Notes under the pieces: model-generated | Seen by the model: the letters and a program-made list of their open reading frames with translations, nothing else | Databases searched by the model: none | Told to the model about the DNA's origin: nothing | Assembly (NCBI GenBank): GCA_002269645.1 | Contig: NIVC01004487.1 | Location: 1 to 44,420 of the forward strand | DNA from: Macrostomum lignano | Lineage: Eukaryota | Reading direction: 5' to 3' | Length of the DNA: 44,420 nucleotides | Made by a program: the position numbers and the translations under genes | In this document: positions 40,101-43,602 of the stretch, one piece after another | Numbering within the stretch: the first letter of the stretch is position 1 | Layout: each line of letters begins with the position of its first letter

Positions 40101-43100
40101 AGACACTTTTTCGATTGACATTTGGCAAAACAGTCGATTTTTTACAACTAATAATTGCATTTCTAGGCCCTCTAAAACGTACTTTACAGCAATACGAACG
40201 AATGTTGGCTCACCATTCTTAAAGCAAGTCTTGTGAAAGATGCCGCTGAAAAATTCCAGCCCGATGATGGCAAAAATCAGAATGGCGAAGAGCACCAGCA
40301 CGGCAATCTGCAGCAAGGGGCCATGGCCCTGATGATGGACTTCAGCACCACCTGGAGGCCTGCGGTTGGCAGTGAGGTATCGTGCTGCTGTTTTCATTAG
40401 CTAACGATTCGGGCATCACATTTAGCCTAATAAACTGAATATTAGCGTATTACGCAATCAACTAGCTTACTGATAACTAGACCATATCCTTTTAATCCAC
40501 ATGCACTTTTAACTCAAATACCTTTGCTGCGAGGGCTGTACATTAGTACACCAAGAATGATTACCTTACGTAGCTGAGGAAATGAAAACTAAGAAAACAG
40601 AAAGGCGATCTTTCTTGCTTACTAGAAATCCATGCACTAAAAGCAGAATCTTATTGAGCACCGCTTCAGCAACCACATCGCCTAGTGCGGTTCGCACAAT
40701 GAAACATCCATGCAACAACTAGCAAGATAAACAACTCATATCCACAGAATTTCTACTTCCCAATCATGCGGTTGCATACGCAAAAGTTTACAGAACTCAT
40801 CGTGAACGCCAAACAGTGCCGAGTTAATTTGAATTTCTACTGCAAAAAAAGTGAGCGCGCAGAACGGGACGAAGGAAACCTTTCGAACAGGAGTCCTCAA
40901 GTATAGCGTTATCCCAGCAAGTCATTTAATCCACGGATTCTATGTTGCCCAGACGTGTCACTTCAGCATTCGCTAGTGCATTTAGCAGCTGTCTCCGAGG
41001 TTAGGGGCACAGACACTGGCTGCTGCTGCTAATACTTGAGAGCGGCAGAAGCTACAGTCTATGGTCTTAACCCCGGCAGGCGGCTGAAGTGGCCAATCTA
41101 GGCAATAAAGAATCTGCGTTTTAATCCGCAGTGTGAGAATCAAGCCATTAAGACTGCCCTTTCATTGTCTATGGCCAGAGAGAGGGGCCTGTGGGGCAGC
41201 CAATTGGGACAGTCGGTCCACAGACACCCCTCTTTGGGCCATAGACAGCGTAAAGCAAGTCGCTTGACTCTCCCGCTGAGTTTTGAATTGCTTGCTCCTG
41301 TGCTCAATTAATTGGCTTGGAAAACGCTATATTTATCTAGAGCCTATCTGATCCCGCCATCTTTATTGACATTTTAGTCAATAATATCATATTCATTGGC
41401 ACATGAATCCACTACACTGAGCTTCAATTTTAATAAGCATAAAAGCTCTTTTCAAATCAGAAAATTTTTGAGACGAAAGGGATTGAGTTGTTTAGAAGAC
41501 AATTTACTGATCGGTGCCTTTGCGTACATGTAGAGCTAAATCGAAATCCAATTAAATAAAGAGGTGCTATTAGTTTATTAATAATTAATTAATCAAGAAC
41601 CGAGAAAGCTACTTGTTGGATAAGTTTTCTTGAGAGTCGCCGCTAGATATCAAAGTGCTTTCTGACCGGATTTACAACCGTAGAATTTGCGTCGAGCATA
41701 AAATAATAGATATAAAGATTCTGAGGAAAATTGCTCTGACTACCGCTGTGATTTAAGTGCTCACTTGCGATAGAAAGGAGATTAGCGTAAGCCAAGCAGA
41801 AGTAATTAGAGAATAGCGAACAAACTTAATCACTGGGTCCGTCCTTTGGACTCAAAATTTTGGGACCCCTCCCCACTGTTTGTGTCGCTGGCGCGTAAAC
41901 GAAATTGAATATTTATGCGCTAAAATCTATGGGGGCGAGTGAGCTCTGGAAATAATATTTGAACGAATTGGCAGGGTGGCAGAAGATCGAAGGCAAACAG
42001 GGGTGTCGGGCAAGGCTGAGCAGGAGAAGCTGGGCAAAGGCACACAGCGTGAGCTCAGGTGGGGCAGTGGCTGTGAGCTTAGGTGGCCGGCGGAATTTTT
42101 CTAGAATTTATGGCCAGAAAAAAGACACAAGAAAATAGGAAGGAGAGAGACTGTGCTTCTTTTCACCAAGAATTCATGCTTGTCAGCAGCAGAGGCTGCA
42201 AGAGTAAAATAATTATGAAAATATTGCTATACAAAAAAGCACGTGTAGAGAGAGAGGCGCCGGGCCAGAGCCGGACTCAAACCGTACTGGGGATGCCGGA
42301 CACCAGCTTCAGCGGTCTCAGCACCCGAACCGCGCGCAGGGTTCGCAAATCAAAGTTGCTCTGATTGGACGCGAACAGAGTGACAAATCTGCAAGATAAT
42401 CAGTCGCAGTCAAACAATGATAATAATTTTAATTGTCGGTGCGTAACGGCACAGTTAACGTGACGTGGCTGCCGGTAGGCAATATGTGTAAGCAAAGCAG
42501 CTTGGTAGGCGAGTTAATGCAGTTCAAACGCACTGGTCATCCGCAGCACAGGCACGCCCCCTTAATCTAATCTAATTTTATCAACTTCCCATGCTTTAGA
42601 CCGAAAAAATGCAATAAAAAACGCGTGTAATTTCACTTCACTTCACGGAAAACTTTTTATGTAGATAGAAAAAGCGACGTGTGTGCACATTTAACAGTAC
42701 TTTGACAGCAGATGGACAACACAGTAATCGGGTAGGGTATTAATAATATGCGGATAATATTGCTGCACGCCAGAAGTTTGGCAGTCGCCGCAAAAAGAAG
42801 CAACGCAGCTGCCGACGCTGGCTACGTTGCTAAGCAGAACTTCAATCGGCACCTCCGAGCAGAAGTGAGTAGAGACAAACACAAAATGGACAAAATTATT
42901 CGCTAATTTCTTTCTGTTGAAACAAATGAGACAGGAAGTGGCTAATGGAGCAAAATCAATCGTTCTGCCGCAAAACTATTATTTAGAGACTCGAAAGACT
43001 CAGCTTCCGAATATTTGGCAGCGTCTAAGCTAGTAAAAGAAGTTAGACCATTTGACAAGAATGGAATTAGGCTCTTGACAATACAAGCAAACTACAGGCA

Positions 43101-43602: not shown

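Follow-up and report, generated by a model that had tools for sequence, protein, structure and literature searches.

A tandem pair of IS4 exons in the Cav2 calcium channel gene of the flatworm Macrostomum lignano, one of them of an apparently deeply conserved type

Contig NIVC01004487.1 of the Macrostomum lignano genome assembly GCA_002269645.1 (44,420 nucleotides, all of which we analyzed and which we refer to as the window) contains on its minus strand a gene that we identify as the Cav2 (cacophony / type-A) calcium-channel alpha-1 subunit, extending from the fourth transmembrane segment of repeat I (IS4) to the C-terminus. The gene has two homologous versions of its IS4 exon in tandem, which we call exon A and exon B. 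The explanation that we favor, with a probability of roughly 0.7, is that A and B are a mutually exclusive pair, that A belongs to an old lineage of exons, and that a base missing from A in the assembly is most likely an assembly error. What is new here is the A-type IS4 exon, which is built unlike the pair of IS4 exons in the Drosophila gene cacophony (cac) and is apparently deeply conserved.

The downstream exon at 12119-12991, used as a query, led us to an M. lignano UniRef entry with an identical stretch, A0A1I8G0I3, and to its cluster mate A0A1I8J3F4 in UniProt (M. lignano, 1889 amino acids). Residues 139-1888 of A0A1I8J3F4 agree block by block with the exons of the window; approximately 1,730 residues are exact, and there are zero substitutions outside one low-complexity stretch. 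When A0A1I8J3F4 was searched against PDB, the Cav2 structures (Cav2.1, 1742 bits; Cav2.2, 1722 bits; Cav2.3, 1705 bits) outscored Cav1.x (~1300 bits), Cav3 (~470 bits) and Nav (~470 bits), and named protein matches annotated as 'type A subunit alpha-1' had 70-74% identity, compared to 52-57% for L-type proteins. The translations of the window also contain the EEEE selectivity-filter motifs (TMEGW, TGEDW, TGEGW and TGESW) and the beta-subunit binding motif (AID) of the I-II linker. It is because of these motifs, together with the higher scores of the Cav2 structures, that we assign the gene to Cav2. No IS2-IS3 exon is present in 43603-44420, so this upstream exon lies beyond the window, and we found no second set of flanking exons around the IS4 pair within it.

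Each exon of the pair spans part of the voltage-sensor domain of repeat I, from the end of IS3 through the S3-S4 linker and all of S4 to the beginning of the S4-S5 linker. Both exons start at the third base of a glycine codon and end at the first base of a serine codon, with AG/GT boundaries. A and B are thus a tandem homologous IS4 pair, with the same phase, the same position in the protein and their own splice sites (coordinates are given in Table 1). We attribute their similarity to homology and not to chance because both match Cav IS4; over the last 22 residues of the cassette, which we call the core and use for all comparisons below, exon B is identical (22/22) to a vertebrate Cav2.1-like channel. 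The translation of exon B falls within residues 139-172 of A0A1I8J3F4 and is identical to it–that is, the public model uses exon B–and its sensor has the positive charges R1-R4 and K5, followed by SGIP. An initial annotation of this DNA had read exon A, after restoring its frame, as a variant in which the outermost arginine (R1) is replaced by proline, the linker is three residues shorter and the end is TGFE instead of SGIP, and our translations bear this out (30 codons in A against 33 in B). Relative to B, exon A has one positive charge less and one negative charge more. The same annotation had pointed out that inclusion of both exons would shift the frame, and indeed B (101 nt) and A (92 nt with the missing base restored) both have lengths of 2 mod 3, which means that double inclusion and double skipping alike break the frame. 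Use of one exon or the other, enforced by the reading frame, is what the exon lengths predict.

As assembled, exon A is one base short, as had been reported at the outset: it is 91 nt long, whereas the intact orthologous exons whose boundaries we read have 92 nt. Sixteen residues can be read in the frame set by its acceptor, followed by a TGA codon, and the remaining 15 residues are in the +1 frame. A single base added at CTGAGG^CGCTG joins the two reading blocks. Homologous exons have AGA GCG, CGA GCC or CGA GCT at this site, and the restoration proposed in the initial annotation is exactly the reading that intact orthologous exons of other species encode. Two other solutions were rejected: an internal acceptor (gaccag/CC) does not rescue the frame of the 91-nt exon, because the 57 nt that remain are 0 and not 2 mod 3, and a base inserted into the CCGG run instead gives QPGTEALR, which is seen in no homolog. 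The splice sites of exon A are consensus.

We think it most likely, and hold this with some confidence, that the frameshift in exon A is a consensus error of the assembly, because the adjacent constitutive exon is also 1 nt short when compared to a protein model for this locus. This constitutive exon changes frame, its two reading blocks sharing one base within GCCCCTTGCTG, and A0A1I8J3F4 reads uninterrupted across the site of the deletion. M. lignano is a neopolyploid with about three paralogous copies of most loci, and coding divergence between copies is ~1.1% (PMC10733133). Given this divergence, the zero substitutions over ~1,730 residues indicate that A0A1I8J3F4 most likely derives from the same locus, in another assembly in which the base is present. 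At least one single-base deletion in the window would therefore be of technical origin or, failing that, a polymorphism. Each of the two is compatible with the contraction of a short run of one base (GGG to GG in exon A; CCCCC to CCCC, or TT to T, in the constitutive exon).

Intact A-type exons turned up in other animals, on 23 contigs from Protopolystoma, Logan short-read assemblies and metagenomes. We define the A-type as an exon of 92 nt whose translation starts with LL, has Pro at R1 and reads PA(L/V)RA(L/I)RVLRPLKLV(T/S)GF(E/S/T). Exon A of the window has all the sequence characters of the type, but with 91 nt it matches the definition only after one base is added. Splice boundaries were read for seven A-type exons, and all seven are 92 nt long and in the same phase. 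When exon A joined to the next exon was used as a protein query, most matches were B-type fragments, but the two lowest matches in the list–a Protopolystoma xenopodis gene model and an open reading frame (ORF) on Logan assemblies–are A-type and have the exact restored reading; a search with the exon-A junction peptide gave three short matches. Logan contigs L001-L009 have a 92-nt A exon with the same boundaries (ag/G TTA ... GAA A/gtaagt). Their similarity to the window (74% nucleotide identity) is confined to the exon, and their core is identical to that of exon A at 22/22 residues even though 18 of the 22 codons differ synonymously by our hand count, which argues for long purifying selection on the peptide. 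The A exons of Protopolystoma (L010) and of a JGI contig (L011) are also 92 nt each. Scanning metagenome contigs with a degenerate DNA pattern specific to A, we obtained 19 loci, including L011, every one of which has an intact A-type frame; splice boundaries were read in five of the 19, and the exon is 92 nt in all five.

The arrangement of the window recurs in some of these contigs. L025, L027, L028 and L029 have an A exon of 92 nt and, 1.3-2.1 kb downstream of it, a canonical B exon, whose length of 104 or 107 nt is again 2 mod 3, and in L025, L028 and L029 the constitutive exon follows B as in the window; contig L027 ends before this point. The IS1-IS3 exons of L029 have 89-91% identity to Crassostrea, the closest among the references compared. 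A group of JGI metagenome contigs labeled 'Ga' (L011-L024 and L030) have an A-type exon ending in TGFS or TGFT, with the next exon directly after it. We detected no B exon on contigs from Protopolystoma, Logan or the 'Ga' group, an absence that carries little weight where contigs are short. The A-type could be the sole IS4 exon of some Cav2-like genes, the 'Ga' group being the candidate. In Schistosoma japonicum and Heterobilharzia, full-length Cav2 gene models have A spliced to the next exon (...VTGFESLQIVLKSII).

The A-type is not confined to flatworms and mollusc-like contigs. In the crinoid Antedon, RefSeq isoform X5 (XP_071948425.1) has an A-like cassette, and fifteen sister isoforms have a B-like cassette. 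Isoforms X5 and X1 share 237 N-terminal and 2211 C-terminal residues without a difference, and only the cassette between them, 30 amino acids long in X5 and 42 in X1, sets them apart. The A-type schistosome models and Antedon X5 have the same exon type as exon A of the window–30 residues, Pro at R1 and (T/S)GFE, followed by SLQ(V/I)VLKS. We found no published account of these schistosome or Antedon isoforms, which are known as database gene models. Core sequences of A-types have 17-22 identities out of 22 among themselves (17-18 between Antedon A and the other A-types) and those of B-types 18-22, compared to 10-15 between A-types and B-type or fly-type exons. In a neighbor-joining analysis of the 22 columns, a clade of A-types that includes Antedon A is set apart from all other sequences in 490 of 500 bootstrap replicates, which is suggestive, not conclusive.

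A differs from B constantly across phyla in three features: the R1 position is Pro, the S3-S4 linker is short, and the elbow between S4 and S5 has GF(E/S/T) where B has GIP. The B-like exon of Antedon also lacks R1 (FDFNTLRAV), so among the sequences compared the loss of R1, or the count of gating charges, is not by itself the conserved difference between A and B. Because the A-types cluster across phyla, the A/B pair is probably older than the split between protostomes and deuterostomes, and the simplest reading is probably a single duplication in an early bilaterian. We lean slightly towards a history in which the ancestral bilaterian Cav2 already had both a canonical B-type exon and an A-type exon (Pro at R1, short linker, GFE), which would have been kept in flatworms, some lophotrochozoans and crinoids, with the A-type becoming the sole IS4 exon in some genes. 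We did not meet the A-type lineage in the vertebrate, arthropod or nematode sequences seen here.

It follows from the exon lengths that only mRNAs with exactly one IS4 exon keep the frame, and that double inclusion or double skipping leads to premature stops. From what is generally known of voltage sensors, the choice of exon may tune sensor I in its voltage dependence, its kinetics or its coupling to the pore: the loss of the outermost charge, the shorter S3-S4 linker and the changed helix-breaking proline at the S4-S5 elbow would be expected to alter the sensor, in a direction that is unpredictable. The difference in activation voltage between the two variants that the initial annotation proposed is plausible, and variants of Cav2 might in this way be made for different cells or compartments. 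A perfect 13-nt complement brackets exon A on the pre-mRNA, with its extended duplex at -28 kcal/mol; 8 of 500 shuffled sequences reach 13 nt. This intronic duplex may loop exon A out, as do the intronic duplexes at exons 5a/5b of vertebrate sodium-channel (SCN) genes (PMC12772994), but such a role is speculative. No second copy of the 13-nt arm, which a model of competing structures would need, was found near exon B at ≤2 mismatches.

Several points weigh against our overall explanation. With respect to the missing base, exon A is the sole alternative exon in the window that has a frameshift; there are just two frameshifts in ~6 kb of coding sequence, a rate that makes it unlikely beforehand that a random error would fall within a stretch of 92 nt; the sole available M. 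lignano protein model uses exon B; and with about three paralogous copies, a dead exon would be tolerable in one of them (PMC10733133). In M. lignano itself, the use of exon A is a prediction from the genome sequence. With respect to age, the stretch on which a deep origin is argued is 22-30 residues long, and A and B are set apart by about five diagnostic columns; similar selection may have produced the likeness of the A-types by convergence; and for Antedon and Schistosoma the isoforms come from database gene models. With respect to looping, the 13-nt complement is just marginally beyond chance.

The first group of points bears on the possibility that the 1-nt deletion is genuine and exon A a recently inactivated pseudo-exon in this copy of the gene, so that exon B is effectively constitutive here and channels containing A are made from another paralogous copy or not at all. 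A frameshift and an in-frame TGA, as assembled, are what a pseudo-exon would have; the only protein model from the species uses B; the genome is neopolyploid and redundant (PMC10733133); and the other alternative exons of the window are intact, which suggests that indels are infrequent. We nevertheless consider this unlikely, for two reasons. The consensus splice sites of exon A, and a core that is unchanged relative to an exon from which it differs synonymously at 18 of 22 codons, would require the inactivation to have been very recent. Moreover, a substitution-free model of the same locus contradicts the deletion in the constitutive exon next to it, so such deletions in this assembly can be technical.

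The second group bears on the possibility that flatworms, the crinoid and the mollusc-like contigs acquired their A-like exons in separate tandem duplications, the likeness being due to convergence and the pair in the window being lineage-specific. In favor of it, S4 exons are both short and under strong constraint, a possible independent duplication of the equivalent sodium-channel exon has been discussed (PMC12772994), and arthropods seem to possess a B-like pair of their own. Convergence would, however, have to account for several independent characters that the A-types have in common–the length of 92 nt, the LL start, Pro at R1, PAxRA and GFE–and for A-types of different phyla having more identities with one another (17-18/22) than with the B exon of the gene they belong to (15/22). 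The bootstrap support of the A clade (490/500) and the order of A then B, which is constant wherever both are on one contig, also point away from it, and we judge it quite improbable. Finally, that A and B belong to different transcription units or promoters, or that A is the constitutive exon of a neighboring truncated gene copy, is very improbable: the 'Ga' contigs, with A followed by the next exon and no B detected, do indicate that A can be a sole IS4 exon, but in the window A and B are 1.1 kb apart with the same flanking exons and the same phase, there is no second set of flanking exons, and in Antedon it is exactly this cassette that is exchanged between isoforms of a single gene.

Table 1. 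Features of the window discussed in the text (slashes mark splice boundaries).
Feature	Position	Strand	Remarks
IS4-A exon	43512-43602	minus	91 nt as assembled; cttgttgcag/GCTTTTAGCG...GGTTTGAGA/gtaagt
Missing-base site in exon A and resulting stop	43551-43559	minus	CTGAGG^CGCTG; AGG 43557-43559; in-frame TGA 43551-43553
A-B intron	42389-43511	minus	1123 nt, from exon coordinates
IS4-B exon, canonical	42288-42388	minus	101 nt; tatcttgcag/ATTTGTC...ATCCCCA/gtacgg; 33 residues between split Gly and Ser codons
Next constitutive exon after the IS4 pair (...KNG)	40214-40359	minus	1-nt deletion relative to the UniProt model
Site of the deletion in the constitutive exon	40311-40321	minus	C/T run
Complement arm, upstream	44292-44304	minus	13-nt perfect complement; candidate looping element
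Complement arm, downstream	43295-43307	minus	in A-B intron, ~205 nt 3' of exon A
IIS3-S4 exon, three tandem versions	36947-37051, 36196-36309, ~34950-35060	minus	
Repeat-II pore/S6 exon, two versions	33691-33825, 32836-33021	minus	ILTSEDWN and ILTGEDWN
Repeat-III pore-loop exon pair	18802-18954, 18420-18560	minus	TVTTGEGWN and TVSTGEGWP
IVS1-S2 exon pair	16170-16280, 14757-14912	minus	
Non-LTR (LINE-like) retrotransposon	~25700-29500	plus	ORFs 26608-28593 and 28814-29425
GC-rich microsatellite blocks	24699-25109, 30090-30383		LSVC repeats in translation
Intronic tandem repeats	7300-8400, 12800-13600	minus	ORFs in several frames
C-terminal coding region	2712-4267	minus	conserved motif ~3520; end of reading frame 2712-2795

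The IS4 pair is not the only set of tandem exon versions in the window, and this Cav2 gene seems unusually rich in tandem alternative exons. The exon for IIS3-S4 is present in three versions, the repeat-II pore/S6 exon in two that differ beside the selectivity-filter glutamate, and the repeat-III pore-loop and IVS1-S2 exons in pairs (Table 1). A0A1I8J3F4 strings the first two IIS3-S4 versions together, and so does not represent a possible real channel; it also joins the whole IVS1-S2 pair and part of the second repeat-III pore-loop exon. A non-LTR (LINE-like) retrotransposon lies antisense within a 6.3-kb intron, its first ORF having endonuclease and reverse-transcriptase domains and its second a weak match to RNase H, and GC-rich microsatellite blocks flank it. 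Other intronic tandem repeats have ORFs in several frames and are probably satellites, not coding. At the 3' end of the gene, the C-terminal coding region runs beyond the public model and ends in ...DDEGAYWC and a stop codon; this end and a conserved C-terminal motif are in different frames, with polyQ/polyA between them, where an intron or another indel is possible.

Most invertebrates have one Cav2 gene, and to our knowledge the source of the varied presynaptic behavior of Cav2 in invertebrates has so far been answered for Drosophila only. Our literature search, which was of incomplete coverage, found nothing on a Cav2 IS4 exon pair outside Drosophila or on an A-type exon. If the pair is conserved from flatworm to crinoid, splicing of sensor I would be an old and general way of tuning Cav2 and not an insect peculiarity, and it would constitute a previously undescribed, roughly half-billion-year-old diversification of presynaptic calcium channels. 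The changes from R1 to Pro, to a shorter linker, and from GIP to GFE would provide a natural set for probing the share of sensor I in the gating and coupling of Cav2. On a practical level, coding exons in this M. lignano assembly contain single-base deletions, and channel annotations from this species need manual curation because A0A1I8J3F4 concatenates mutually exclusive exons.

Comparable splicing is known in other channels. The variants made from exons 5a/5b (5N/5A) of vertebrate SCN genes differ at one or a few residues, unlike A and B of M. lignano, which differ at about half of their positions as well as in linker length and charge. These SCN exons encode S3-S4 of domain I, are mutually exclusive and 92 nt each, and date back to the chordate ancestor, and the choice between them is modulated by an intronic RNA duplex (PMC12772994). 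They resemble the M. lignano pair in occupying the equivalent position of a four-domain channel and in that double inclusion or skipping breaks the frame, but they belong to the Nav family and not to Cav2.

Among vertebrate calcium channels, exon 29 of Cav1.1 is a site of splice variation in IVS3-S4. Exons 24 and 31 of rat Cav2.1 bring splice variation into the IIIS3-S4 and IVS3-S4 loops (PMC11828482). As predicted for M. lignano, splicing in these channels alters the length of the S3-S4 linker beside a voltage sensor, and it shifts gating or pharmacology. The vertebrate cases differ from ours in that repeats III and IV, and not repeat I, receive a short insertion or cassette and that no whole S4 is swapped.

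The closest counterpart is the cac gene itself. Its exons IS4A and IS4B are both 99 bp (33 amino acids) and differ at 13 residues, IS4A having one positive charge more (PMC11828482); they are exons 5 and 6, with the less charged IS4B downstream (PMC12370356). The choice of IS4 exon in the fly changes activation voltage and active-zone targeting (PMC11828482; PMC12370356), and IS4B is required for sustained high-voltage-activated current and for active-zone localization (PMC11828482). Both species thus have, in the same gene family, a tandem pair of exons for S4 of repeat I that differ in positive charge and are used, or in M. lignano predicted to be used, one at a time. However, the two cac exons are equal in length whereas those of M. 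lignano are 101 and 92 nt, and the less charged exon is downstream in the fly (IS4B) but upstream in M. lignano (A). As for a shared origin with the fly exons, which the initial annotation had raised, we compared one fly exon (D. albomicans X12): it keeps R1, ends in SRIP, has 10-12/22 identities with A-types and groups with the B-types, not with the A-types, and neither Pro at R1 nor GFE is found in it. With different lengths, a reversed charge order and a fly exon of B-type affinity, the parallel that had been drawn with cac IS4A/IS4B stands as an analogy only. The M. lignano pair is probably a functional analog of the fly pair and not its ortholog, and the fly pair is probably the product of a separate duplication on the arthropod side.

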